NCBI GenBank assembly: GCA_900088475.1
Contig: FLMG01004002.1
Span: 54,402 to 118,401, forward strand
From: Hyphochytrium catenoides
Taxonomy: Eukaryota; Protista; Hyphochytriomycota
Reading direction: 5' to 3'
DNA length: 64,000 nucleotides
Both the position numbers and the translations under genes were made by a program. This document shows, one piece after another, positions 1 through 61,881 of this stretch (positions are counted from its first letter, which is position 1; each line of letters starts with the position of its first letter). The notes beneath the pieces were generated by a model. It saw only the letters and a program-made list of their open reading frames with translations. It had not been told where the DNA came from and made no database searches.

Positions 1-3000
1 ATTAAAGAAATGAGGTACACTCCGGGACCAAGAGAACAAGTAACTGGAGGACAAATTGGTGGGGAAAGCTGAACGACAAAGCAAACGCGGAAGAGCCTGT
101 TCGCAACCGAAGTTGATAAGAAAAGGAGAATGCCCTAATTAAGCTCTTACCTGTGCAAGGATATTGATGTTGGTGCTCTTTCCTCCTCCGGTAGGCCCAA
201 CCAACATGATCCCATGCCTCACACAGAGAGTCTCATACAGTTGAACTACCTTAGAGAGAAATGAAGGAGGAGAAAGGAGACCTTCCCGTTCACATTGCAG
301 ACCCACAGCCCGGTGAAGTGCCATCAAGTCAGAAGGGGGCCGCTCGAGACCCGGGAAGAGATCTGCTAGGATACCCTGAAAGAGAGGAAGATCTTGAGCA
401 AGGAACTTAGGCAGATTTACATCCTGCAGTGCTCTTAGTAAAAGAGCCTCTTCATCCATCTCCGGGTTCTGACGCTTCAGATTGCCGGCCGCGGTAATTG
501 TGGTCTGAATGGGTCATAGGAGAGGGCCACGAGAAGAGCGATATAAGGACGAGAGAGAGGACGCGTTCAAGACACCGAGACCTAAACTACAGAAGGAAAT
601 GCGACGATCTCATCAAGAATGTAAAATGAAGAGGCGTCGCTGAAACTGACAGAAAATGAAAGCACGAGCTCCAAATGGAGCAGATGTGAGTCGCAAGTAG
701 CCGATGACAATAAAAATGTGTCCTCCTTTTTAGGCCAATCTTGGGAAGAGTCACCTACCTTTACAGCTCTCATCCCATAATCATAGTGGAACTGGGCGGA
801 GAGCTGCTCGGAGCAGAGCTTAAAGGTGCTAACCATTTTCTGCCCACATTCTCTTGCCCTTCCAAATCCAAAAGCGAAGAAAAGAATTTCTCCAATTAGG
901 GCGTAGTCGGGAACCATCATTGCAACAGGTCTGAACAGAGCTGCTAAAGAATCTGGGAGCTCGGAACGTCCTGCATAACCTGGGTTCATCGTAATGAAAA
1001 CCCCGAACTGGTCATTTAAGGGAATGTCCGAGCCTTCGAAGATCAGACGCTGTGAAGAGAAACCGTCAGCAGAGGTACCAGGGTAATGGGACTATGCGAA
1101 GAGGCTACATCAGTAAGAAGGAAGACTTACCTTCTCTCCTCTTCGGATGCCCATTTGAATGGTAATGACTTGCTGTCCAACCACCGACAGCACCTCCACG
1201 TCAATGCGGTTAAACTCATCAAAGCATGCCCAGGCTCCGCAAGAGGCAAGGCCCTTAAAAAACTTCCCCATAGCAATATAGTCCAATCCTACATGTTCGT
1301 GGTAAGATGTTAGAAAAAGCTAAGAGAGACACATGGCCAGAAAAAGCTTTCGCTCCAACGCTATTTTGGCAACACTGCTGCTTTTAGTTCTTTGCCTACC
1401 ATCTGAACAGTTAAAGACTACGCACTGCTTAGCCAGGGCCTTAGCGAGATCCTTGGTGGACTCAGTCTTTCCGGTACCTGCGGGACCGGCAGGAGCCCCA
1501 CCCAGAGTCATCTGCAGAGCTGTGAAGACAAAAGGGTAAAGCTGATGAAAATTGTCTGACAGAGAACTGGAAGCCCCAAAATGAGGTTATGCCGCTGAAC
1601 CTCGTCAGATCTAAAGTGCCCTCTCCGTAATCCTATTCATGAGTTCAATGACACTTCCTCCTGTTGGTGCTTCTTCTCCTTGATGCGGTCCTTTTTGCCA
1701 TATCGTGTAGATCTTACCTGCCAGTAAGGTCATGTAGCACTTATCGGTGAGCGGAGTGATGACCAGCCTCATAGAATTGCCAAGATATTCGTAGCCGTAA
1801 GGCCGCCGTGCGGAGACCATCTCTGCCCAAAGATTTCCATCATCCTTTCCTTCCCCTTGTCCTTCTTTCTCTCTCACCCAGTAGTATCTTAATTGGCTAA
1901 TCCAGTTAAAGTCCGCGACATCCTTCACTCCTCCTCCCTTTTCCCCGTCACCCTCTTGCAATAAAGAGGCAGTGACGTCTCTTGCATGCACATCGAGGAC
2001 TGTCAATGCTCCGAGCGTGGTTCTGGTTTGACCACTAATGTTGGAGCGGACGAGACGGACCATATCGGCCAGCTGAGCCAGTTGAAGGTCTAGTTGAGCT
2101 TTGATCCCAGTAGGGCCTGCAGAGGTAATAGCCTCTTCCATCTGACGAGTCCAATGAGTCTGCGACGCATTCAGGACGCACATGCCTGGCGAACCAGATA
2201 AAGAGGATTAGGGCAATGAAACCTCCCTAGGTACGTACACACTACACTCCATTCCACAGGGTCATATTGGCAAGTGCAAGTTGATACCTGGCCATCGCTG
2301 TATCCATTTCGTCCGCGGCGTGGCCTCATAATCCAGAATAGCAGCCTTCATTGCCTCCCTGACCGCTTCCCGCATGCTTTGCTCCAGGTCACCCATCCAG
2401 ATCTCCACTGCTCTTCCTTTTGTCTCAATGGGAGAAGAAAGGGGAACGGTCTCCTCCTCTGCACTGATCATCGCACTAATCGTTCCGTCAGCCCTGCAAA
2501 GGACCTTCACTAGACCCTCAAAGCACTTCTTAAGATGCGGTTGCACTCTCTGGACATCTCTCCCCTCAGACAGGAGAGAAAGCAGCTCTTCATTTGCAAG
2601 AAAATAGAAGCGGGAGAAAGCTGCACGCTTGGTCTCAAGGTAATCGCTGAGGCCTAGTTTAGAGGGCAATTCACGTCAGTTAGTAAGATTGTGTTGGGCA
2701 AAGGAACACCGATATCAACAGAACCGGGTAAGACCAAGAGCCCGCAAACATTGGGAAGAAGAGGGCCCGCCACGGCAATGGTGGTGAATTGGTGTTTTCT
2801 ATGGAGAGACTAGTAAGGGAAAAGAGAGGAGGGCAAAGGAGAGATTGCAGAGGTCGGGAATTGTGTTCATCTCACCTTTTTGAACGCTTTCAAGCATCCT
2901 ATTGCTCTCCTTCAACTTCTGGAGAAGCCTCTCATTGTCGCAAACCTTTAAAACTGAAGGTTTGGAGTGCGCTTGTGCCAACATATTGCGGTAGGTCTTA

Positions 3001-6000
3001 TCGACTGTTGAGAAGCGCTTGCTTTCGGTCGGAAGCTAGGTGTATACGGAGCACGACGTAGAGGGAAGCACAAATGAATTGACGTTAGGCGCAATACTCT
3101 CCCTGAGGGTGATATAAGGTACCAAGCAGTGCACTGCAAGCTATTTGGCTTTAGGATATTTCCAAGGCTGCTTGCAATCCTTCCCTGGGTGCCGTCCGGT
3201 TTTCCTCTCATAAACTGACCGACCATCGTCCTCACCTGCTTGATAATTTCTGGGGAGTCAAAAATGGGCTGAAGATAAAGCCAGCTTCTTTGAACCGCCA
3301 TCCACTCCTCCAAGACCTCGCTGATGAGACTGAGTGAAACGGACCAGCGCTCAATTTTTTCTTCGTAAGGCTTCTTGAAGGGAGAGAACTGCAAGGTTTG
3401 GACCATTGTCAGCTTTTCTCCAAGATCAGCCAGAACTTCCTCCACGGCTCTCAAGATGAACGTCTGCGTCTCCCGGTAAGGTACAACTTGAAGAGAGAGA
3501 AGAGAAAGCCCCTTTTCAATCTCATCTAAGGCTTTTTCAATCTGGTACTCCTTGTTCGCAGTCTCGGCTTTTTTAGAAAGAATAGAAGAGAGCAAGCATG
3601 GAGTGAGTGTGCCGTCTAGTAGAACGAGCAAAGGATCTCTGCCAACAAGGGGGTAAAGAACAATGTAGGTGCTAGCAGAAGTGAGTTGCACTAGTCACGA
3701 AGCCAAGCAACAGGTAAATATACGTTTAAGAGGGAGGGGGAGGCTTACCAACTTTTGAGATGAGCGTGAGATGTTCTGCGAGGTTCATGTTCAGCATATC
3801 GGCCAACGAATTCTTCTCGTTTGGAGCGATGGGCTTTCCAATCTGTGCTCCCAGAGCCTCCCAATGACGGAGGCCTAGGCCAGGCGTCCTCAGCGCAGTT
3901 ATGAGAGGAAGGTGTTCCTTGAACGCCAATATTCTTGTTTTGATCTCAGTGGCAATGGCTGAACAATCCACATTCTGAGCCTTTTCAAAATACTTCGATG
4001 CCTTCTGTGCGCCCATCCATAGACTCTCGAGCTCTTTTTCCATGGCGTCGGGAGAGAGAGAGAGGAACTGACCATCCATCCAAGAGGATTGTCTACGGAG
4101 AAAGTTGCTGGTCGTAACCCAAAGGAGAGTATAGGGTTCAAGGGACTTCTTGAGAGTATCCAGAAGTTCAAAGCGAGACAAAGTTAGGGAAAGCAGCTCT
4201 TCTCGGCTATTGTGCAGCGCTCTCTCCTCTTCAAACTTCTTAATCTTTTTCTCCAGCACGTCGACATGCAGTCTGATCTGGTCAATGTTCCTTATATCTT
4301 TGTATCGTGAGACGACTTGTATCTCATTATCCAGACTCTGTAGGGCGTCCATCATCAGGACGCTATCCTCTTGAACACTATGTAAAATGGCTTTAGCACT
4401 CTGATTGTAAGAGGCAAAATAACGTTGACAGAAAGAATGAAGCAAGACAGAGAGAAATAGGGGGAAATTAACGTCTTACATCGTCGAGAAATTAGATCTG
4501 AGTTCTTCAATGACCAAGCGTGTCCTCTCTACCTTCCTCCCAATTCTGAGAGGAAAGCTCTTCCTCTCCAAAAGCTTTCTAGCATCTTCTTCTGGAACAA
4601 TGAAGTGAAAGTTCCAAAGTGATTGGAGGCATCTCTCGGCCTCATCTTCTCTTTCCTTCAACGCTTGCAGCTCATGTGGAACAGTGGCAGATATGTACTC
4701 TACCAACGCCGTCAATTGCTCCACGTCTCCAGGGGTCTTGGAGAGGGTGTCTATGACCTAAGGTCAAAATAAGCCAGCAGCAAAGTGGAAGAAAGGGAAG
4801 CAGAGTGAGAACAGCCATCATCCATTAGAGTTATCATCCTTAACCGTATCCAACTCAAATACTTTAATGGCATCTTTCTCCTGGTATTCTTTGTTGGCAC
4901 TTACCTTAAGATACTTCGCCTCGCTCTGATTTCTGACTGCCCTTGCCCTCCTCAACAGAAAGTCTTGTAACTGGTGGGCGACCTCCAGATGCTTTTTGAG
5001 AAGTACTCCGCGGACTTCGGCGCAGTTGACCGCAATCATACCAAAGTTGACTAAGTTTCTTGGTATCTCTTCGTCAGCAGCCCGAGCTAACTTCAGGCGA
5101 TTGCGAATTTCCGTCTCTATTTGCAACAGATGGTGAGGAGGAAGAGGCACTGAAGGATCATCAATAAGACCCCTCGCGGCCACCCCAGCTGCCACCTTCT
5201 CTGCTTCCAAATCCGCTGCCGCTTCACCTGTAGAAGCTGCCTCTGAGGCTTCGGTGGATAATGACTTGGAAAAAGGAGCAGAGGAGGATGTTCCTCCTGC
5301 GCTGACGTACTGTAAGACATGCTCCTTGGTGTCCAAGGATAAGGTCTCAACATGCTTGTTGAACATCGTAAGATACTGCATGAGAGGAGCGGTATATTCT
5401 CTCATTCTTCGTGCAAGGCCATTTCTACATGCTTGTATAGACTCCTCTTCAAATGAAACGGGAGTTAGAGAAGGGTGGCTACTCCAGAAGAAGTGCTTCA
5501 TAGCATACTGCTCCGGATTCTTAACCTTAAAAGTGCTTTTTAGAGCGCTGTCAAAAACCCGAAGCAGCGACTCTTCAAATTTCTGCAATTCGGTGTTATA
5601 CGTAAACCCATAACCTTCCCGAGGAGAAAGCGGAGAAAGAGGGCAAGGATCTGACGAACTTCCGCCCGCTTTCTTGCGCTCGGTGTACCAGGCCTCGATC
5701 TCCTGTTGCATGTGAATAGATCACTCCGGTTAGAGCTGCAGCACTTTTGGAAGCTGACAGCAGGTGCACACATGAAAGTGATGGCCCATTTTAAGCAGAT
5801 AGTAATGCGGGATGCCCTAAGAAGACGTCGAAGAGAGCACGAACAACAGCATCGCTTTCTACCTAACCTTGTTCCGTTGGAGCATCTCTGCCTCGTTTAT
5901 AATCGCTTTGTCCTTGCTGATGACGAGGTCAACGTAAAAAGTAGGGGGATGCAGGTGTAGTCCGTCCGCTCCGTTGACTTCCTTCATTGTCTTACTGTCT

Positions 6001-9000
6001 CCGCTAACTTCCAGGGTTCGCCCATATGGTGTTTTCCGACAACTTCTGATGATGACTTCATTTATGCTTCGCACCTCGACGGTGCTGGAGTCGTATGGCT
6101 CAAAGAGCCCACAGAACTCAGAGAGCGAAGTTAATGTTGCAGTGCGCAATGCCGACTGAGTAACATTGGCGGGGAGAAGTTAGTCCAACAAATGTACAGA
6201 AAAAGAGGCTTCTGCAGAAGACAACAACCAAAACCCAAAACATGCCTAGACAAGAAGACGAATCGAAGAGACCGAGAGGAGGTCGGAGAACTTAATAGGC
6301 AGACCAGCCTAGCAGACCTGCATCATCAGCCGGATACGTATGAATAGCTTCTTCAGCTTGGAGTACTGGTATGAGTCAAAGTCGCTCTGACCCATGTGGA
6401 ACCAGCCTTTTTGGACCGGGGCCAACCCGCCTTCTATCGCTTTTACGACCTCCTGCACCCATACACCTTCTAGATACTCCGCGGCTGAGGAGATTGTCAC
6501 TTCCTGCTGTTGTGCAAACTCCTAAGGTGGGCGAAGAAGCATTATGATGAATAGCAACATTAGATTACTCTTGTGTCAATCATTCTAATTATCAGATTCC
6601 AGTGAGGAGGTGCCATACGTCGGAGAGATTTGAAACCCTTCGTCGAAACGCTAAGAGGACGATGAGAACCATTGCCCTTCACAGGGTTATACCTTGAGCC
6701 TTGCCGCTCGACCTGGCTTGACAATGAGAAGTTTTTTACTAGCTGTGCGGTCACATTCAGCCAACGTGGAGACTAACACAGCTATGACCTGTACAGAGAG
6801 GCAAAAAATCACTCCTTTCGGAAAACCCAGAGCTCACCGTCGTTCAGAGACTAAGCAGGTGACCGAATAGCTCATGAAGAGTGAACACTGAGTGACTCTT
6901 GTGGCAGAAGGTGACTATCGGATATCGCACTCTTTAACATATTCAATATAGAGGAGGAAGGAGATTCATCAAGACTAAAGGTTTCTTGGATCTTCGTTTA
7001 AAAGGCGATGAATGACAAGTAGAATGGCTGGCTCACCTCTGCTGTTGTCAGGCATGTCTCTGTCAAGAAAGAGGTCTTCTTTTCTCGGACGGCTGCTGGA
7101 GAGAGTTTCAGGTTGTCCATTCGAGGATGGCCGTAACTGGAAGACAGAGGATCTTTGCAATGCCGAGCAATCACGCTGAGAAAATCAGGATTACTGCTAA
7201 TGACCGGCGTGATCCAGATCAGCAACATGAATCACGAGGCACGATACGCAGGTAGGAGATAGGAAGGTTAGCATGAATGCCAATGTTATAGCTCAGTGGG
7301 GAGGCAGGGAATCCCCCCAATACACATGTTTTGACATTGATAGGAGTTTGATAGAGGACAATGTCCATGATGGTGGACCAAAACATGGGAAGGATCAAAG
7401 ACGAGAAAAAGAGCATGATGTCAAGGTCTATCTAACCGTAGACGAAACAAATTGAGCAACAAAGAACATGTTAGCTCCGACTGATCCCTTCCCTTACCCG
7501 GAAACAAGGGCATGCGAATCAAAGGCAAGCTTGTTTAGCGTTCTTTGGTATGCTCTGGATATTTCCACTAGTAGATTTTTGAGAAGATTCTCCTGGTAAG
7601 GTGTTTGACCCTGGGATGAGGATTTCCCGTCGCCTTTTTCAGGAATATTTACTTTTCTGCGCAGTCTTTGCCGCTGATTCATACCAATCTGAATGGTAAG
7701 GAAGCTTAGACTGGCACAAGAAATTGGAGCTCATAGAAGTGATGTCCGAAGCCCAGGCCAGAGCTATACGGTCATACGTACGCAGCCGCAGAAACAGGTA
7801 GCACCAGCAAAAGTCATACGGAAGAGGTGATATGAAAAGCTATCAGGAAGACCTACATCAGGCATGCCCTCAAGTGGCATACAGTCAACAGAAAGGCTGT
7901 AGTGAAGGTTCTGCAGGGTCTCATGACGGAGCTTGTGTGCTCTCGCAAGCCTTTGCGCAAACAGAACTGGATCCTCTACTCTGAACCAGATTTTAAGTCT
8001 GGGAATGCTCTCCTCAAGAGGTTCGAGTGTTGGGTCCTTGAAGATGACCTTGAAATGTCGCTGGACGGGATCGTAGGACGTGACGATACATTCAGACCAC
8101 TGACCAGCCGCAGAACCCTTCATGCGCTGTGCCATAGCAGGTATCGCCACTCCTCCCTTCTTCTGGCACTTTCCAAGTTCTATCCATCTCTAGAGGGTAT
8201 ATTACAAAGTCGTGTGAGAGGCGGAGGATGGGGAAAGGCCCTAGACTAAGCTGAGGAACGAAACACCCAAGCGGGGAAAGCAGGGAGTTCGTGATAGCTT
8301 ACCTCAGGGGGATGAGCCTCATAGTATTCTGCATCGTCGAAATCTTCGAGTTTCAGGAACGACTCCAACGGGGAGAGAGCATCGCTGATGGACAGCTGGT
8401 GGAGTTCTGTAGAGACTAAGGGACCTATGTCTGTTTCCATGTATTGCCTTCTTAATCTGCACGACCACACCATCAAATGCAGTCAGCGGAAGCAGGCCTT
8501 ATAAAGTAAGCCAGCAAGTGTTTCTATGTTACTTGCATGAATGTGGTAGTAGAAGAAGAGTGTAAGATCGATAGAGAAGACGAAAGAGTTTGCGGTCTCA
8601 TATTAGAGAATTGAAAGGTGGTCCCGCACCCACTCACCTCTCAATTATAACGCCTCGTGGAGTTTGCCCGCGCTGGCGGTTGTGTGGAACCCAAGCCTTT
8701 GGCTCCAAGGTTCCAAAGTCGTCATAGCGGCTAAAGCTGCAGTCACTATTATTCCTCTTCCGGCCAATGGTGGACTCTTGAGTCGTGGTTTGGCTGTCTC
8801 CTGCTAATACGGCTAGAGGAGGAGGTGCAAAGGACGCTGCTTCTTGCCGCCGTGTAGGTGAGCAGTAGCCCTCCGATACATGGCCTATGACTGAATGCTC
8901 GGTATCTCTAATCACCAAACTCTGGTCTGGAAACTCTCCCTTTACAATAGGGGTAATACTAGCCCTGTTATTGGGGCCGCTGCCCGGTGGGGCTTGCGGC

Positions 9001-9023
9001 CTTGATGGCTTCAATCGGACCAT
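1..9023 (-). CDS. DNAH1: Axonemal inner-arm dynein heavy chain, DNAH1 type; multi-exon, 5' part only, continues past the window start
   Basis: Exons encode the AAA1 P-loop [42 protein letters not shown] and the AAA2 P-loop GPTGGGKS, plus linker motifs WLYLQPIF and [14 protein letters not shown]-terminal motifs ([46 protein letters not shown]) match the DNAH1 tail as I recall it. The GT-AG junctions I checked in 150-6320 keep the frame. The ATG at 9023 has an in-frame TAA just upstream; the start is approximate. Confidence 0.93.
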
Positions 9024-9972
9024 TTACGCTTTTAGGTCCTCAATCGGAGACTGGGAGTCCTCCTTCACTCTTCCTGGTCCGCACCTCCCGAGTAATCACC
9101 TCGCTGGTGCTCTTAATCACAAATACCTGCTCGGATATCCGTCATTGGCAGAGATCACTACCAGGTCCCGTATTACTGCCTCCATGACCTGCCTCCTCAG
9201 GAAGTGGTACAAGCTGCTGAGAAACTAGAGAGTGCTAGGAGAGAATCTCAAGTGGAAGAAGAGCTGTTTGGCTGCGAAGCACTGACAGAATCTTCTCTCT
9301 CTGTCTCCCGGTAGAGCACCTCCTTATCATTCATCAGCTCTCAGTGTTGTTAGAGCTTCCGATCAAGTCCTTGCGGCCGCCTGTCCGTGCTCCATTCCAC
9401 GACCTGTGAGCCTCCTCTCACCCAAAGCTTTCGTGCCGTTTCAAACAAAGTCCCTCTTCGTTAATGCTATCAAGAATGAAACTCATGCATAACTATATTA
9501 TCAGCGATTAGAATGACTGCTAGAGTAATTGTTCATTGTTTGTGGTCCTTTATTCTTACTGAGCCGTTTCAGTGTTCGCCAGATTGTCGCTAACGCCAAC
9601 CTGCGCCCATGGTTAGTTTAGAGTAATCAGTCTATGATTATCACCGTTGAACCAAAGCTGATCTAACTGAAGAGAAGGGCGCAGTAAGTAACTTTCTTAT
9701 ATAGCTGCTAACGGTATCTCGTACGTTCGATTGGTCTGCGGCTCATTTCACGAGGAGGTGTGAGGCTTCTGACCCGCGCTTCTGATGATGGAAAAGGCAT
9801 GCGCTCAACTGCCAGCCGTTCTCTGGTCCAACTGCGAGCTCTGAGTAGTCTTCAATCTCTACTCGAGCTAGTCCACCGTGGTGCCTGGACTCATACAGCA
9901 TAGGCAACCCTTGCCCCTGCTTCCTAGGCAGCGAGCCTCTGGTCTTTGTGCTTTTCATAGCAGCCTGTGGGC

Positions 9973-51700: not shown

Positions 51701-52994
51701 CAACACTGTAGCGCGCTCCATCTTGGACGATCCCATCTATCTCCTTTGTTACTTTTCAGGGCGCTACTGGGCATGAGCTTTGCCGTGACTTCTCTAATTG
51801 GCTGACCACCGTTTATAACCATCTTCTTTATGACTTCTCTCGCGTCGTCTATCCTGCATGCGACTTGATAGTGTGTGGATCAAAGGCCGAGAATTCACCC
51901 TGGATGGCCTTCTGGGTCCTCGGAAGGATCTTGTTGAGCAATTCCAAGGAGCAGCAATGGCTATTTTCCGACTTGCTCCACAAGACTACCACCGCTGGCA
52001 CTGGCCTTGTGATGGTGTTGTTGGCAAGCGGACAGTGGTAAGAATCCAATAGCTCTGGGACACATGACGCGAGACGGACAAATCAGAAGATGTATAACTC
52101 AACAAGGGAAGAAGTTAGTAAAGCTTTTGACTATGGTACTGGTGGAAGCTCTGGATAACACATGTCACGCACGCTGAGCGCCAAATGCTTAGCTCCTCGA
52201 CAACGGCGTAGTCCATGTCGGATGGGCTTCCACTTAACATTTTGGTCTTCTCTTTCCCTCTGCGCTGCCTTCACTGCCCATCCCTCTGTACTAGGTACCG
52301 GGATCGCTCTTCACAGTTAATCCTATTGCTGTAAGAGAGGAGACCATCAACGTTTTCACCGAGAACAGCAGGGTCATTTGCGAGTTGGAATCGGACGCCT
52401 TTGGAAAGGTGCTTCTCATTGCGGTTGGAGCCACGATGGTTGGGTCCATCAACTTTATAGAGGGGAAGTCAGAAGAGGGAACGGTGCGTATCTTCTCTGT
52501 TCTTCATATTCTCCCTTGTCCAATGGACAGAATAGCAACCTAGTATAGTTTTGCCTTTCCGCTTTGCACCTCTACACTGTGGTCGCCCGCTTTACATTCT
52601 TCGTCTTAAGAAACTTCGTAACCTACCTCTGACCATGAAGTGACTCATCTCGTAGAGGGTAAAGAAGGGCGATCAACACGGATATTTCGCCTTTGGTGGC
52701 TCAACTTGCGTGGTCCTCTTCCAGCGGAACAAAATCGTTTTTGATTACGACATCCTAAGGAACTCCCGGAAGCCTATAGAAACACTCGTCAAAGTGAATA
52801 CCTCCTTAGGCAGTTCACCAGAACTCTCTCGTACACTCTCTCCTAAAAGTGCGGTGACCCTTTCCCCTCGCGGAGTAGTAGTAGGCACCAACTTAGGGGC
52901 AAGGGGGGATGGCGAACGGAAGACGGTTGATGAAGGAGTCAAGGGAGAAGGGATGGCACCAGCGACCATTAGCGAGGAGGCTTCCCTCAAGTAG
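48764..52994 (+). CDS. PSD2: Type II phosphatidylserine decarboxylase proenzyme with C2 domains and EF-hands; multi-exon
   Basis: C2 domain (FSVNLVQ|AKG..PYG..KKTSNPVWN..VSFWDD), a second degenerate C2, EF loops (DVNAD.., DKDKNGTLDKAE), FKTFNQFFYRSLKPDARP, SADCR, FRLAPQDYHRWH, VNPIAV, VGATMVGSI and the GYFAFGGST self-cleavage motif (52695-52706). The start MGQKGS is myristoylation-like. Confidence 0.93.
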
Positions 52995-53370: not shown

Positions 53371-56300
53371 TTAACATGAACTGATGAGACCGGTTAAAAC
53401 GACAAAAGCGAGCGGGAGAGCACTGTATGACGGCGGACCCAACGACCCGAGGAAGGCGCTCTTACGTCTGAATGTTTGGTTTTCATTGACCTTCCCCTTG
53501 ATTAGCCGGCTCAGTGCAGATCGTGGCTGCTCACGAGGGAGAAGATCATCCAGTGCCTGCAAGAACTATTCACTTAGCAGTTAGGAATCTAGAAGCGTGA
53601 CGGACGATAGCTGGCATAGGGAGCTAAGGAAGAAGTGGAAATAGGTGGAGAAGGGTCCACAAAAAAGTGAGGGGTCCAACGCCATTTCATACATACCTCG
53701 TCTATATCCTCCACACCCCAGTACCCTTTGTCAAGGGCTTCAAAACAAAGAAACGCTGACAGCACCAAGTCTGGGCTCTGTAGCTGCTCCACCTCGCTGA
53801 CAGTGCGTTAGCAAACAGCATTAACAAACCAATTTAGGCTCAAAGTCCCATGCCCGGAAGACTTTAGCTCAAGGAGTCTCACCGTCTTTGGAGTGTCTTC
53901 AAGTTTGAAAAGGTGGAGTTCCACAGTCTCTCCCAAGCGGATAAGGGACCCTGGAGCAATCACAGTGAGATCCTTATAGGCGTCAGTCCCATCAGGGACC
54001 AAGGACTTAGCAAAAAGGTTATTCCCATCTTGGGAAGCTAATAAGTCAAAGTGATGTCACGTACCTGTTGCTGATCCCTGGAGACTACACCAGGACATAC
54101 GGAAGGCAACACACAGTGAAAGCAAGTGTGGTGTTGGTCGGCAGTGGTAGTCAAAGGACAGATTTAGGTCTATAACTTACAACCTCCAGACTTCCACTTC
54201 TTCCATCCTGCCCGCTTAGCTGCAGGTTGGCCAGCTTCCGTTGCAGCGCGCTCCACACTCTGGTTGATTGGATCGGTCTTCTCGACCACGTGGCGACCCG
54301 TCTTTCCTATGTATAACCTGGCAGAGGCGCCATCGTAGAGCTTCCTCCCGTCACCTAAATCGATTGGAGTGCCATCAAAGGCGATAACTTCCATCATTTC
54401 ATCTTCCGCTAAGAGTCACGAAAAGGAGGTCTTAGATGTTGGCTGCACCGAAGACACTGCTTGACGGAGAAGAGTCCTTCTAGATGCACTAAGGCTTATT
54501 ATCTTCTTCAAAAGGATCCAACTTTATGGAGGTTCCCGGAATAATAATGAGAAACAGAGAGTACAAAAACCTACCGACACCAAATCTCAGCCTCACAAGA
54601 TCCACCACTTGCGACCTCGGAGTCCCCACGTAGTAGGAGAGCAAGACCGACCTTGATCCTGTCTCCTTAGCATGAAGCTTTAAGTGATTTCTAAGGCTTA
54701 CGTATGAAGATGTAGGAAAGAGGCAAGGGAGGAGCCGAAGGTAAATGCTCTGTCACGCAAGGGATACCAAAGAGGCCACAGACCCCATACCTGAGATGGG
54801 GCTTGGACTTTGAATTGGAGAGGTTGATGACCCAGAGCTTTTTGATACATTCGTCACATGTACGTTTGCCATATGCATCTAGGGTTAAGACACGAGCCGT
54901 TCACCCCAATAAGCCATTATATCGTGCATGCGCCGAGCATATACATCATCAAAGGGGTAGGAAAGAAGGTGAAATGACGGTGACAACCTGCGAAATAACG
55001 AGAACAATACTATGCAGGGAGGCATTGGCCAGGATTTGGTTTACCTGCGGCAGGACCGTGTACTAGTCGAAAGGAAGAACAATCGGAACAGACTTGCTGA
55101 GTGCATAACTAAAGAGGAGGACATGCGGATGAACGGGGTAAATGGTGAGCACCGGCTCAAATTGCCTCCGGCCAAGGTCAACCCACCCGGCATCTGAGTC
55201 TTCTGAAGAAAAAGTTGAACGTTGCTAGTGGTTTGCGACAGACGTGACAGGTTCTGTTTAGAGTTTGACGCGCCTTCCGGGCTGGGATCGGGCGATTGGG
55301 TAAGGTTCCAGCTAAAAGGGCGTCGATATCATCTACATGCAGACTACCGACAAGACAACCTGAGTAACGTAGGAGCAATAAAAGAGGAACTTGGATATGC
55401 ATCTTTCTACCATCTGCTTACAAACTTTTTAGACTTTAGAAGCAGTGGTTGCTGAAAGTGACCAAAGAATAACTCCGTCTTTCTTTCTGTACCTGTTGGT
55501 GTCGTATAGATCAAGCTCTGCCTTCATGAGCTGCCTCACAAAGCCCATGTTCGGGAAGATGATTGGCCGGCGCTTCAGACAATAGTTCTGTGCTGTGATG
55601 AGCGACCACTGACAATTCTTCATCAAATAATAAATAACTGTAAACGTCAGAGGAAGGCGAACCACAGGCGGAAGCAGATTAGGGACGACGTTTCGGGGAG
55701 CACCTCCCTCTAACCAGGGACGTATGCGTTAAACAACTTGATTGACAGTAGGCTCCTACCTATAGTTGCTGAGCGAGAGATGCCTTGGGTACAGTGCACT
55801 AGAACCCTGCTCTTTCGCTTCCTGGCTGCTTCCTCTACAAGGAATGCACGTAAGGAAGCAACGGAGTAAGCGACTGATTGGGTTCATATTTCCAAGGATA
55901 ATGCCCACATACAGTACGAAAGGACTCACTTTGTGAAAGGTTCTATGGATACTCATAGTTGATTGCTCTAACGACTTACCGAGAAATCTGCATGATGAAG
56001 CGAAGAATGCGCCAATGTCTTCGTCCGGTTTGTCCTTGATTGAGATGTTGAGATACTCTACTCCTTTGTCCTCAAAGAGGTTGCCGCAGTCTTGGGTGAC
56101 ATTGATGATATGGGTAATACCCAGATTCTGGAGGATTTGGAAATGCGTGGCCTGCGATTATTACACGCAGAATAAGGTCATCAAGGCATTCCTTAGGAGG
56201 CCGGAGCAAAGACGAATATATGTGGGGTAAGAAAACATCCTAGCCCTTTCGTCTGCGCCAGATTGACAGCTTTTCTACCAATACTGAAAAAATGTGACAT

Positions 56301-59300
56301 GCTCTACCATCAGACACCTTACCTGCCACAAGTTCCCCAGGTAAAGAAACCCTTCGATTATTTCGTTGGGATACGTGATTGTATGACCCCCTACGAGCCG
56401 CGTCACCGGTGAGCCGCTGCATAAGCTAACGTAACTCTACCCTGACGAGCGGGAGTGGACTGTTTTCTGGTCCCACCTTACTCCAGCACTCCAGCTCTAA
56501 GTACTTACCGCTCTCTGTTAAGAACCCGCCTTGCGTTCCTCCTGCAGCCTTGTCCTCATACTCCGTGGTCATGAAAGGATAACGAATATGAAATGTTGAA
56601 TAGGAGTCTAGAAACGCAGTTGATCCATACGGACAGGAGGTTAGACGTGGCTCAGGAGAACAGAGACAAGCAGGAGATATCAGCAACGAGCATTGTCTTG
56701 GATTCCCAGGAAAGTGGAAATTGCATATAAGCAGGAGATTTAAGCAACGAGGAGGGTCTTGGAGTCTTTTCACCATCAATATTGCTAAGACAACCCGCAT
56801 GCGCCAAGTAAATCGTCACAGATCGCGCCTTATAGAACAATACCTGCTAGATAAGAGACGGACGCAGCCACCTTCTCGAGTATGAGGAAGTCTGCTAACT
56901 TGCTCGTCCATGACGACCGATGCTTGCTTTTAGCTGAATCGTCATCAAAAATAACAACTTCCATAAACTTTCTTCTTGAAAAGAGCCGTTTCTATCCATT
57001 GGCGCACCATATATAAGGTAAGCTCATGATGGACATCTTCATAACCTCAGTCACCTGTTCTTCCATGCAGTTGCTTTCGATCTGGTCAAGCGATCTGGGA
57101 TGGGGCATCGGAGGCACGGAAATGGCGGAGTAGATTGTCCCAGTTTGGTATTGCGTGCGTTCTCTGTTCGTCAGGCGTATTGTCAATGTTCGAAGACCCT
57201 CAGAGAGCTCAACTGTGAGCAGTTCTGAGCTTCAGCAAAAGAAAGCTATCATGTCACCTTGCGTCAATGAGGATCATTCCTCCCGGCACCTGGAGCCTAT
57301 TGAACAACCAGTTGCATGTCACCATAGGAATGTCAATCTTGACTTTTGCCTGTAGCTAGGTTTCCCGAGAGGTAGCAGAGGCCAAACGGTAAGAGCAATA
57401 AGGCACGCCATCTCCGAAGCCAAACCCTGTCCAGCAATACTGGCAGTAATGTCCAAAGGAGACAAAATTATGAGCTATATAGCACCTGTGCGGTCTCGTA
57501 CTCTGATGACCGTCGTTCCGTGGAGCTTGCTAAGAAGGATCGCATAACGCTGGCATCCTGGCTCTCAATCTTTTGATTCAACGAAAATGATGGTGTCTGA
57601 ACCGTGGCAAGAGAGGCTTGATATTCACCGTTTCGCAAAGGCTCAATCTCACATTCCGATACACTACATAGATGGACCAATCGCCATAAAGAGGACGAAA
57701 CGGAAAAAATGCCTTACTCTTAACTTCCAATTGGGGTCGACAGCCAGTATACCAAACAAGTGGAGTGAAGTGATGAAGGAAGTAGATGATGCCGTACTAC
57801 ATAAATGCAAATCATGTATGTAAAGTGTGCCATTCTTCGAAGAGGAGTGTGCCGACAGAAACGGTAAGACAGCATTAGAGATAGTAGAGGTAGATGAATC
57901 CATTAGTCACTTGTGGCTACCTCGCTGTCCCAAAAAGGTCCTGCTCCAACCGGCCCAGGATTCGTATCATCTTCTTGGGAAGATACACCACCGGCCGACA
58001 TCGTAGGACATAGGAATAAGCGCGCAAAAGATTGTACCTAGGGAGGAGACAGCTCGTTAGTGCACGACCTACGCGGGTTACACTTTCACTAAGGAGAACA
58101 CGGTGAAGACTAGACCTTACTTGTGCACACGCATTAAGATGTACATAGCTAGTGCTGCTGATGCCGCGATTCCCTGGGTACAGTGTACCAATACCTTTGC
58201 GTGGGACGACTGAGCCTCATCTATCGATGGACAGCCAAGGGAGCCAGAAAGTGAGTGTCGAGGGTACTCATCCACAGTGCACCACTTATTATGTGTCAAT
58301 ACCTATGACTGCATCGACCGCGTGCGTGTCGATGGCGTCGCTCTCTGCCGGGAACTGCTGCTGGATGTACCTGAGAAGCCTCAAATCAAAAACATCTTTG
58401 ACAAGACCATGACGGGTACGGCAGGTGCTTGTTTTTGCCAAGAAAGACGAAGTTAGGGTGCTCTGTTTCAACATATACCTTAAGCCCTCTAACTGTGGGT
58501 GGTCCTTTTCGTCGACAGCCAGCGAGATGATGTGCTTGATGTCCAAAGCACGAAGCACTTTCTCATCTCGCGCCTCGAGTAATGTGCAAGTACGTAAGCG
58601 TGGACTGCTAACCGGCCTCTGTTCTCCTTCTAGCTCACCTGCCAAATATTCCCGAGATAAAGGAGCCCTGGAATAATCTCACTAGGAAATCTTGTATCAA
58701 AGCCCTCGGCTTCGAGCGCAGAGGAAGAAGTTATCAATATCCTATACCGCTTGGAGAAAGTATCGAAACCACCTTCCACGCAAAGTAGAAGCTGCGGTTA
58801 GCGATGGCCTTCGGCAGGGTTTCTGACCAAATAAAGACTGCGAACGAATACCGGGCAGGGAGCTATACTGGCGGTAAGAGGAGAAGAGAGAACACGTGAA
58901 GGTCCGCCCGAAAATTTGTGAGGAGCAAGCACCTTCTAAATAGAGAATGTTCGAATACTGTAACTCCTCTTGAAGAAGTTTTACGAGATGAGCAACCCAG
59001 CTTCTCCCTGCTCCAATTCCGGGGCTTGGTTCAGAGCTTACGTCTGCCCGATCTTGATGAAGGTTCATGCCATCGTCGTCATAAAGGATGATATCTATCG
59101 CTTCATAGTCCCGACTCATACCCTGTTGTAGGCAAAGGTGACATCCACATTAGTGGTTATCATGCCCACACATGAAGGCTTTAGCTTTTAGATTGGGCAA
59201 ATCCGAAGTAAAGCGGTGGAAAAACACCTTTCATGAGAAGATGTAGCGACGGTATGGATGCAGGCCCCAGTTGACAACACAAACGAAAGTAGGATGACAC

Positions 59301-60676
59301 CTTGAGAGATTTGGCGGTGATGTGCGAGTCTGCAGCACTGTCTATCACTTCAAGAAGATTGTTGGCATCCAGGGCTGGAGGAAGATTGACACTGCCTCTT
59401 ATATGAGCTTTAGGGGAAGGTCCAGAGGACAAGTTGTCGGAATGCGGGAATAAGCGTGGCATTAACGTTAGCGTGACCCAGTCGTGGAAAGAGTAAAAAA
59501 GAAAAGAAGATAATCCAGACTTACCGAGTTCGAACTCCGCTTGCGGCCGTAGGTCAATGATGATCACGTCCTCAGGATGCTGAAGAACATTGAAAAGCTG
59601 AGTGGGCTCGACTACCTGTACGGTTGTTAATGGCGGTTTTGCCTATGATCGCACGAAAGAGCCTAGTTAGCTTCCTATGGACTCCTTGTCCTCCTTTTTG
59701 TTGCGGAGATAGCAGGCTCCACAGTGACGACAAAGGGCCTACCTCGCTGCTAAGTGTTGGATCCTCCTTCTCATCTGTGTGGGAGGCCTTTCTTCCACCT
59801 AGACACGAGTTGCACTAAATGTTGGACCACAACTTCTGAACCATTTTCTCGATATGACCTAAATCACCTAGCCTAGAACGTGTACTCTACGATACCATAC
59901 CATCATCGGACCGACTCTGAAGTACCGAGTTGGACGAGAACGCACGTCTTAACCTTGGTGATGGGCGTTGCAGCCTTTAAGGAGAGAGTAAGGTGAGAGG
60001 TAAGTACCATTGACAGACGGTAAGGAACTCGGTAAGTAAGATAACTTTAACGTAAAGCACGGATGCAGACAGTGAGGAGGGGGAGGCCCAAATCAGCCGC
60101 TTAGGTTGCATGAGTTTAAGGAAGTCGTCCTCAATCTTGATCCCTCACCTTCTGCTTGTCGAATCATGACCGAAAAAAGCCTTGAACGTCTCGGGCTGGG
60201 CAAACATATGAGCCGAAAAGGTCAAGAAGAGCAAGCCTGGATTCATCTGCAAAATGAGTCACCTTATCCACTGATGCATGGCGCTGATTCTTGCCTCTGT
60301 TTTCTGTTCCTATTCTCAGCCGGTAAAGAGCGGGGCGCTGGACAATAGAGACGATCAGCCTTCGACTTTTCTAGCAGAACGTCTCCTTATCAGGTCTCCT
60401 TACATTCTCCCTTTCTTGAGCCACAAGGCACAGCCATCCACGCTCACAAAATGAGTTGAGGAGCTGCTCCGCTTGCGCTTTGGTGGGCTGACTGTCAAGG
60501 TTGCAAGAAGAAGAGTATTGGGCATCACCGAGCTTAACATAGACCTCGGGTTGCTGCAGGATGTCAAGCAGCTCAGCTGAAGAGATGCAGTTGGCAAATA
60601 AGTTGATGAAGTAACGGTGGTTCTTGACTAAACCCGCAGCTTCAACTATCCTTCTAAACTCTTCCTCTTTCTCCAT
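53371..60676 (-). CDS. Multidomain dual-specificity phosphatase: DEP - rhodanese - DSP (Arg-less) - rhodanese - DSP (intact) - FYVE-like - C-terminal region; multi-exon
   Basis: DEP-like VKNHRYFINLFANCISSAELLD..TKAQAEQLLNSFCERGWL; rhodanese VEPTQLFNVLQ..IIDLRPQAEFEL|AHIRGSVNLP; DSP1 PSEIIPGLLYLGN..VLVHCTQGIAAS; DSP2 YPTQIIEGFLYLGN..IKDKPDED..VLVHCTQGISRS..RRPIIFPNMGFVRQL; zinc finger CHVC/CRLC/CSDC/CDEC. The 3' end is approximate and some middle junctions are unresolved. Confidence 0.8.
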
Positions 60677-61140
60677 TGCCGGACAAGCTGAACAAAGGCC
60701 TTATCAAATCTGCGCAAGATGTCGCAGTGCTCTAGTGTCAGCTCCAGCTACGCTCAGCCACCAGGGGTCCAGCATCATGTTCATTTGGTTTTCTCACGCG
60801 CACAAATTCCCGTCACGCTGCCTTGAAGACGTATTAGCGCAGGTCTCAATGAGGCTCTGCCTCTAATCATCGAGTTCTAGAAGCTGCTATTTCCACAGGG
60901 GAGTGGAGCCAAGAAGTAGCCCCGAGCCCAGCCAGTCGTTTGGGTTACTTAAAGAGCCTCCCGCTCTACTGCCCACAGCTGAGGACAAGACGGCGTAGCA
61001 AGACACAAGCTGTGTTGCTATTGCCAGACAGACGACAGACTCATGCAGATCAGAAGGCTGGCGAGCTTTTCCTCTTCATAGGAAAAAAATGTAGCAGCGC
61101 CCCCGCAACTTCAATATCCTACAGCTGTAGAGCACGGAGA

Positions 61141-61460
61141 GCAGCAAGAGGGTTGGACAAGGGAGAGAGGGGAGGATGGTCATACAGAGAGGAATGGGCT
61201 TCAGAGAGAGAGAGGGAGGACAAGAGGAAAGGAGAAACGAGGAGAGGAGAGAGAAAGTGTGGCGAGAGAACCAAGAAAGAGAGACAGAGACAGAGGGAGA
61301 GAAAGAGAGACAGAGGGAGAGACGGCAAGGAGAAACGAGGAAAGAGAGAGGAAGTGTGAAGAGAGAGAACCCAGGTGAGAAAGAGACAGAGGGAGGGAGG
61401 AAGAGAAGAACAAGAGACAGAGTGAGAGAGAGAGAGAGAGAGCGGGAATGAGGGAGAGAT
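61141..61460. repeat. GA-rich polypurine low-complexity tract
   Basis: Directly visible, in the spacer between two divergent genes. Confidence 0.9.
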
Positions 61461-61881
61461 AAAACAGCTTCTTCCGTAAAAATGGCCTGATCGCAGCGAA
61501 AGGTTCATAATAAGGTTCCTGAAATAATAGTATAGAGCCATTGTACTTGCACCCTTGAAGGAATATTCCCAGTTAAAGCAACCTTGCGAAACCTTCCGAA
61601 TGGTTTCAGCAGCGGCGAACAGGCTGCACTCGTTTGACGCACATTTTCAAGGTGAAAGACGCTCCCTTGCCGCTCTGCTCTCGACTCTCCTTCAAGGACT
61701 TTATTTAGCATTCAAAGCCCATTGACACTATTGATAACAAGGAGAAGATAGAGTCTCACTGAGCTTTCTTTACCGCTGAAGTCTTGCAGCTGCGGATGCC
61801 TAGGATGGTTTGACCTGAGACTCCTGGTAGAGGATGGCGTAAGAGTGAACAAGCACGATCTAATCCCACTTGCTATCAAGC

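Follow-up and report, generated by a model that had tools for sequence, protein, structure and literature searches.

Tandem rhodanese and dual-specificity phosphatase modules at a Hyphochytrium catenoides locus, the first with a P-loop that retains cysteine and lacks arginine

Does a single locus of Hyphochytrium catenoides encode one chain with two dual-specificity phosphatase (DSP) domains, one fit for catalysis and one not, and to which proteins would such a chain be related? The locus lies on the minus strand of a 64,000-nucleotide stretch of contig FLMG01004002.1 (assembly GCA_900088475.1, positions 54,402 to 118,401), called the window below; all positions are counted from its first letter. 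It contains two modules, each made up of a rhodanese/CH2 domain followed by a DSP domain, and with moderate confidence we read the region as one gene for a membrane-targeted protein of about 1192 residues that resembles the mitogen-activated protein kinase (MAPK) phosphatases (MKPs), in which module 2 would be active and module 1 crippled. The gene is a variant of a tandem MKP-like family that is already deposited and uncharacterised, and its new part is a first phosphatase domain (DSP1) that has the catalytic Cys and no Arg.

Pseudophosphatases are known mostly from animals, where they include STYX, MK-STYX, and the D2 domains of receptor protein tyrosine phosphatases (PTPs). No paper was found that describes a protein with an active and an inactive DSP in tandem. 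The family supplies a natural series for one domain: an active-type form encoded by a separate gene in the Peronosporales, a fused Cys-to-Ser trap in the Saprolegniales, and the Arg-less form with Cys described here. Comparison across it could reveal how an enzymatic domain turns regulatory. The family also joins an MKP-like enzyme to elements that target membranes, whether a FYVE-type finger, a CaaX box, or a hydrophobic tail. Such a pairing suggests that MAPKs are controlled at membranes in a lineage with important pathogens of plants and animals. The interest of the case is moderate because the family has already been deposited and because the single transcript and the loss of activity are predictions.

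Gene model and phosphatase domains

The gene model was built by direct reading of the minus strand and was then checked by a script that used coordinates only. It extends from an ATG at 60676 to a TAA at 53371-53373 in 29 exons (Table 1); every junction is in phase, no exon or split codon contains a stop, and the total length is divisible by 3. The encoded order is rhodanese 1, DSP1, a linker, rhodanese 2, DSP2, a FYVE-like finger, a ubiquitin-like (UBL-like) region, and a hydrophobic tail. Homology evidence on the gene comes from exon-by-exon searches, and codon scores were calculated with a table trained on eleven other long open reading frames within the window.

The rhodanese domain of module 2 scored 107.8 bits (summed) against a profile of relatives that carry a FYVE-type finger and 80.0 bits against a profile of relatives that end in a CaaX box; for DSP2 the corresponding sums were 180.7 and 169.1 bits. 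These profile scores place module 2 clearly in the FYVE-type group. The Pfam Rhodanese model matches the region equivalent to rhodanese 2 in relatives. The P-loop of DSP2, HCTQGISRS, is encoded at 55770-55796 inside a single exon. The Asp of the IKD motif in exon 19 aligns with the general acid (ISD) of MKP-3/Pyst1 (PDB 1mkp), which together with Slingshot-2 and DUSP4 provided the best solved-structure matches of that exon (1mkp, 3ezz, and 2hxp among the MKPs). DSP2 has the HCX5R(S/T) sequence and general acid of MKP-type phosphatases and is preceded by the rhodanese/CH2 domain typical of that class. A basic cluster ahead of the VVIFDDD strand of rhodanese 2 is conserved, with R-K-L invariant there in relatives, and is a candidate kinase interaction motif. 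Module 2, with its Cys, Arg, general-acid Asp, and PNxGF motif, would be the enzyme and would probably dephosphorylate a MAP-kinase-type substrate docked on this cluster.

The module in front of it appears to be a second, older, and much diverged rhodanese-DSP unit that has kept its P-loop frame and Cys. Rhodanese 1 matched the Pfam Rhodanese model just below its cut-off (E = 1.7e-3; 19.2 bits, with a cut-off of 22.2) and reached 6 to 26 bits (summed) against the family profiles. Pfam DSPc matched three exon pieces spanning both modules, with an E value of 1.1e-6 on the exon 11 segment. The DSP1 P-loop, HCTQGIAAS, is encoded at 58159-58185, wholly within exon 11; aligned to solved DSPs, the loop places its second Ala at the position of the catalytic Arg and its first at that of the Ser before it. 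His-Cys, Gly, and the loop frame are kept, and six residues are identical to those of the active-type DSP2, whereas the PNxGF motif present in DSP2 is missing and Ala for Arg breaks the HCX5R(S/T) feature of MKP-type DSPs. Because each P-loop sits inside one exon, both are unaffected by splicing choices. Intron 9/10 of the DSP1 region (58371-58478, minus strand, 108 nt) contains no stop and continues the reading frame of the exons on either side, and its retention would add 36 residues to DSP1 while leaving the frame intact.

A sequencing error is an unlikely source of the Arg-to-Ala change because at least two base changes would be needed to turn the second Ala codon into any Arg codon (the IAAS codons read ATC GCG GCA TCA) and because the neighbouring Ser is altered too; the locus is also single copy in the 61-Mb assembly. 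In Cys-based phosphatases the P-loop Arg binds phosphate and stabilises the transition state, and its mutation lowers activity by orders of magnitude. Since the phosphate-clamping Arg and the Ser before it are both lost, DSP1 should be severely impaired in catalysis and, in contrast to STYX-type domains, should bind phosphate poorly. Module 1 is most likely a docking or regulatory module.

Twelve open exons with intact GT-AG borders and compatible phases, in-frame codon scores that are positive in all but exon 11 while other frames are mostly negative, and the kept structural motifs LYLGN.WQ and VLVHC all argue against reading module 1 (exons 1 to 12) as a decaying remnant that lies outside any functional product and leaves module 2 as the only functional gene. 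Such decay would account for the strong divergence of the module (6 to 63 bits against the family profiles) and for its missing catalytic residues, and we regard it as very improbable.

These results agree with most of what a first-pass annotation of the window had read from the locus. Its span, 53371-60676, is that of the hand-built model. The two rhodanese-DSP modules that it described are borne out by DSPc matches on both, by a Rhodanese match below the cut-off on module 1, and by the family profiles for module 2. Translation and structural alignment likewise confirmed the Ala at the invariant Arg position of DSP1 and, in DSP2, the intact loop with an upstream general-acid Asp, which completes a catalytic set of His-Cys, Arg, and Asp.

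Relatives in the oomycetes and the history of module 1

A HMMER search of 1.84 billion representative proteins with exon 19 as the query returned no near-identical protein, and the gene product is therefore not in that library. The best match was P0001 (860 aa, Logan, unplaced), and P0057 from Thraustotheca clavata (OQS03324.1) scored much lower, at 37.8 bits. Both have the layout rhodanese-DSP-rhodanese-DSP-FYVE, and the same order was found in P0171 to P0173 and P0175. A word search with the conserved half of P0057 recovered proteins of Saprolegnia parasitica (SPRG_14484), S. diclina (SDRG_06997), Achlya hypogyna, Aphanomyces cochlioides, and A. invadans, along with about 40 single-module rhodanese-DSP-FYVE proteins across oomycetes; the Pfam DEP model matches none of these entries. 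A metagenome scan with exon 19 yielded only relatives at 33-42% identity. Every close relative to which a taxon is assigned comes from an oomycete, with identities of about 35-55%, and the family, with its rhodanese/CH2 domain, DSP bearing HCTQG(I/V)SRS, FYVE-type finger, and ubiquitin-like domain, has so far been seen only in oomycete-like stramenopiles. The tandem architecture, which the first-pass annotation could not place in any model organism, is thus not peculiar to H. catenoides: entries from Saprolegnia, Achlya, Thraustotheca, and Aphanomyces share it, without the DEP domain.

The Saprolegniales tandem proteins and P0001 follow the window from rhodanese 1 through DSP1, the linker, rhodanese 2, and DSP2 with HCTQG(I/V)SRS to the ELD..P.RP.P motif, the FYVE-type finger, and the post-FYVE domain, and their DSP1 is likewise predicted to be inactive and has lost PNxGF. 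The way in which the loop is broken differs. In these relatives VH-S-xxG-x-SR is invariant, with Ser for Cys and the Arg kept, whereas DSP1 of the window keeps Cys and has Ala for Arg. The Saprolegniales proteins also differ from the window in having no PF00610 DEP domain and no hydrophobic tail, and their genes are seemingly intron-poor; the H. catenoides gene is far richer in introns than the genes of its oomycete relatives appear to be. Because VH-S-xxG-x-SR is invariant in the aligned Saprolegniales and Logan relatives, a noncatalytic first module would be the norm in this family. The proposal of the first-pass annotation that one module had turned regulatory fits this pattern, the N-terminal DSP being a predicted pseudophosphatase in relatives of the same layout.

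A P-loop with Cys kept and Arg lost occurred in 0 of the 229 relatives compared. This singular state, the preserved His-Cys, Gly, loop frame, and six shared residues, and the complementary loss in the Saprolegniales, which gave up Cys and kept Arg so that the last shared form may have had both, could be taken to mean that DSP1 is still an enzyme, with another substrate class or a low rate, or that its Cys serves as a redox-sensitive switch rather than as part of a dead scaffold. We consider this improbable. Active Cys-based phosphatases invariably carry this Arg, the Ser ahead of its position has also been replaced, PNxGF is lost, and exons 9 and 10 have diverged too far to match solved DSPs or family profiles.

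Peronosporales genomes have, in place of module 1, an independent gene upstream that encodes rhodanese, DSP with an active-type P-loop, and a CaaX box. The two genes carry consecutive locus tags in the pairs F442_01122/01121 and DVH05_018252/018251, and further pairs lie on the same contigs; P0174, P0177, and P0178 are annotations that fuse the two. The CaaX-type genes, single-module rhodanese-DSP-FYVE proteins such as PHYSODRAFT_542317 of Phytophthora sojae, and two H. catenoides paralogues on C625 and C2498 have the same P-loop as DSP2 of the window and, unlike it, no extra N-terminal module. In the CaaX-type relatives, prenylation replaces the zinc finger. Because many single-module relatives end in a CaaX-like box, the family seems to swap its membrane anchors, using prenylation, a FYVE finger, or a hydrophobic tail. 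CaaX-like ends (CTVM, CYVM, CIIS, and CVIM) were observed in P0007, P0009, P0012, P0041, P0067, P0071, P0094, P0105, P0160, and P0162.

The origin of module 1, whether by the internal duplication that the first-pass annotation inferred or by inheritance of an older tandem, was approached by scoring single exons against profiles of three groups: the relatives' pseudo-DSP1, the CaaX type, and the FYVE type. The signals were mixed. Exon 12 scored best with the pseudo-DSP1 profile (15.0 bits, versus 9.5 and 8.2), exon 8 with the CaaX type, whose members were also its best matches, and exon 11 with the active-type DSP2s. In a maximum-likelihood tree restricted to database domains, the relatives' pseudo-DSP1 domains formed one clade (100/99), the origin of which is unsettled because it joins other long branches. 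Three intron positions are common to both modules of the window and to the C2498 paralogue and are therefore old; one further intron, common to the two modules of the window alone, is weak evidence at most. It is conceivable, and is put forward tentatively, that the N-terminal DSP of an old tandem phosphatase was switched off independently, by Cys to Ser in the Saprolegniales and by Arg to Ala here, and that the Arg-less, Cys-bearing domain has a function of its own. The Saprolegniales form might then be a natural substrate trap, and the Arg-less DSP1 might regulate the active domain beside it in a redox-sensitive or phosphate-independent way.

The first-pass annotation had given FSTQGISRS as the P-loop of the animal protein STYXL1/MK-STYX, and the published loop reads IFSTQGISRS, compared with VHCQAGISRS in MKP-1 (PMC2873733); TQGISRS is therefore truly common to MK-STYX and DSP2. 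In the protein atlas, the family member P0009 is nearest to STYXL1 clusters (0.93 and 0.92), with DUSP10 at 0.91, and some NCBI submitters have named oomycete members STYXL1; we treat these, like the common string, as leads toward the STYXL1 affinity that the first-pass annotation inferred. STYXL1 has the rhodanese/CH2 domain and DSP in common with the window, but it has a single module, no FYVE domain, and neither His nor Cys in its loop, whereas both modules of the window have His-Cys, so that the FSX5R signature is absent from them.

The MKPs DUSP6/MKP-3, DUSP4, DUSP9, DUSP10, and DUSP16 share with the window a CH2 domain and a DSP with HCX5R and a general-acid Asp, and DUSP10 and DUSP16 were the best animal matches of family members. 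They have xAG in the P-loop in contrast to TQG in the window, which also differs in its tandem modules, FYVE-type finger, and UBL-like domain. The domain tree put the three groups of the family outside a clade (96/98) that contained the majority of the remaining DSPs in the sample, the DUSP10, DUSP16, and DUSP3 rows among them, while P0160 and P0161 fell inside the family. The D1-D2 pairs of receptor PTPs resemble the window in placing one active and one inactive phosphatase domain in a chain, as an analogy of design only: they have the classical PTP fold, their active domain comes first, and there is no sequence relationship. No paper on the tandem layout or on the adjacent-gene arrangement was found in the literature on oomycetes, FYVE domains, DSPs, rhodaneses, or phosphatomes, and a 2024 paper on the oomycete phosphatome makes no mention of FYVE, rhodanese, or pseudophosphatases (PMC10925823).

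One gene or two

Because oomycetes display both the fused and the separate state, the choice between one gene and two is the main uncertainty at this locus. It turns on exon 13, the Ser/Glu-rich linker. No stop interrupts this exon, and both of its ends keep the phase; its in-frame codon score is +15.3 bits (+16.1 when the training set includes all introns), against about -10 in the other frames. The part ahead of its only Met already reaches +10.6 bits, the flanking introns score negative in every frame, and the stop-free extension ahead of its acceptor scores -4. These values, together with the fused state of the Saprolegniales proteins and P0001, make one transcript across both modules quite likely.

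Several points count against a single two-module protein of this kind. Exon 13 has no homologue, as judged by its failure to match the family profile, and its codon score is equalled or exceeded by 11% of the stop-free windows in the rest of the 64 kb. Reading on past the exon 12 donor gives an Arg codon and then a TAG at 57916-57918, exon 14 contains an in-frame ATG eight codons ahead of a conserved Trp, and the Peronosporales hold the equivalent modules as two adjacent genes. Farther upstream, the codon scores of exons 2 to 4 are weak (+2.7, +0.6, and +8.9). Exons 9 and 10 match no family profile and, at E values up to 10, no solved DSP, even when read through the stop-free intron between them, and the general-acid position of DSP1 is thus left unaligned; its loss of activity is a prediction. 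FYVE domains that bind phosphatidylinositol 3-phosphate (PI3P) have a His pair and a WxxD motif, both missing from the finger (no WxxD precedes its first CxxC), and no database protein exceeds about 55% identity to the query exon.

The immediate TAG after the exon 12 donor and the ATG in exon 14 are what make a two-gene reading possible. Gene A would cover the DEP-like exon together with rhodanese 1 and an Arg-less DSP1 and would end at that TAG; gene B would start at that ATG and supply rhodanese 2 and DSP2 along with the FYVE-like finger and UBL-like domain; and exon 13, which lacks a homologue, would be noncoding. This would reproduce the Peronosporalean arrangement of a rhodanese-DSP-CaaX gene adjoining a rhodanese-DSP-FYVE gene, including the pairs that some annotations have fused, and single-module relatives begin about 10 residues ahead of the same Trp. 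We nevertheless judge it unlikely. The open, phased, and positively scoring exon 13 stands between introns and an upstream extension that all score negative, gene A would lack the CaaX tail found on the separate upstream genes, and a 3' untranslated region (UTR), a promoter, and a 5' UTR would have to fit into no more than about 590 nt, while the fused state is known to exist in Saprolegniales and in P0001. The single gene is the model used in Table 1.

Gene ends, membrane-directed parts, and neighbouring loci

Table 1. Exons of the gene model and the features assigned to them
Feature	Positions	Strand	Content and basis
Whole gene	53371-60676	-	29 exons, 28 GT-AG introns of 63-257 nt, 1192 codons plus stop
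Exon 1	60404-60676	-	91 codons from ATG; DEP-like, weak Pfam support
Exons 2-4	59743-60246	-	Ser/Arg-rich linker from exon 1 to rhodanese 1; phases; no homology support
Exons 5-8	58639-59615	-	Rhodanese/CH2 domain 1, divergent; 3' end of exon 8 begins DSP1
Exons 9-12	57921-58573	-	DSP1 body; Pfam DSPc, P-loop translation, alignment to solved DSPs
Exon 13	57486-57663	-	59-codon Ser/Glu-rich linker, sole link between modules; codon scores
Exons 14-17	56509-57349	-	Rhodanese/CH2 domain 2; family profiles
Exons 18-21	55493-56390	-	DSP2: general-acid Asp (exon 19), P-loop, PNxGF; Pfam DSPc, profiles
Exons 22-24	54791-55343	-	Conserved ELD..LL..P.RP.P motif, then eight-Cys FYVE-like finger; family profile
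Exons 25-26	54181-54690	-	Post-FYVE domain, predicted ubiquitin-like (beta-grasp) in family; profile, paralogue model
Exons 27-29	53371-54037	-	Lineage-specific C terminus; codon scores +9.3, +13.4, +4.2

Exons 3, 4, and 5 contain no in-frame start codon, and upstream exons are therefore needed. Exon 2 opens with an ATG and is a possible alternative start. Exon 1 is taken to be coding because its codon score is positive in frame (+23.5 bits) and negative in the other frames (-5.9 and -30.9); it has no paralogue in the genome. The DEP domain that the first-pass annotation assigned here did not hold up. The Pfam DEP model (PF00610) matched 26 residues with E = 1.1e-3 and 19.3 bits, against a cut-off of 32.7, and a genome-wide DEP scan found twelve other sites and not exon 1. 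Alignment by hhalign to a profile of eight DEP domains from the same genome gave a probability of 3%, in the expected DEP-like register. A PDB sequence search with exon 1 returned a chance ribosomal match only, the protein atlas search returned nothing, and an AlphaFold2 (AF2) single-sequence fold had a low-confidence pLDDT of 53. It is possible that exon 1 encodes a much diverged DEP domain. Just upstream of the gene, at about 61100-61500, lies a CT-rich low-complexity stretch with spurious long open frames on both strands, rich in Ser/Leu/Pro or Arg/Glu.

The FYVE-like domain of the first-pass annotation was upheld. The fold is of the FYVE type by homology, with eight Cys in four CxxC pairs; the successive exons 22, 23, and 24 align with positions 8-52, 54-70, and 86-106 of the family profile (31.1, 15.0, and 19.7 bits). 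The lipid-binding motifs R(R/K)HHCR, WxxD, and RVC are missing: the core reads RRLRCR and the last motif RTC. The Pfam FYVE model matches the relatives and the C625 paralogue, the model of which matches the FYVE domains of RUFY, EEA1, and Hrs, and gave no match on the window exons alone. Without the His pair, WxxD, and an exact RVC, PI3P binding by this finger is doubtful.

Exons 22 to 25 are collinear with the post-DSP region of the family, that is, with the ELD..P.RP.P motif, the zinc finger, and a domain with the motif Y.eGT...RF.V. Exon 25 scored 17.5 bits at profile positions 118-154, and exon 26 scored a weak 2.7 bits. In the AF2 model of the C625 paralogue (pLDDT 78), a strand-strand-helix-strand-strand unit follows the FYVE domain and has weak UBL, SUMO, and RA matches; on this model the post-FYVE domain is predicted to be a ubiquitin-like beta-grasp. 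Exons 27 to 29 had no match to the family profile. They end in about 18 hydrophobic residues (53374-53427) just ahead of the stop, possibly a tail anchor where relatives have a CaaX box or no such element, and the zinc finger and this tail together would hold the protein on a membrane.

The C625 paralogue (C625:104000-113999, at about 7471-9346, plus strand) has few introns and encodes rhodanese, DSP with HCTQGISRS, a FYVE domain with a Pfam score of 44 bits, and a UBL-like domain. There is no start codon in the open frame ahead of its rhodanese domain, and open frames upstream (6857-7403) have no Pfam match; this paralogue may carry a further N-terminal part. The C2498 paralogue (C2498:58000-67999, at about 6273-9217, plus strand) is an intron-rich gene of the order rhodanese, DSP, FYVE, and UBL-like. 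Upstream of it lies a gene for a histidine phosphatase of the phosphoglycerate mutase type (2790-3170, Pfam His_Phos_1).

The downstream neighbour of the phosphatase gene in the window is a phosphatidylserine decarboxylase gene on the plus strand (51858-52049, with pieces to about 52994; Pfam PS_Dcarbxylase, 2.6e-11), convergent with the phosphatase gene at the latter's 3' end.

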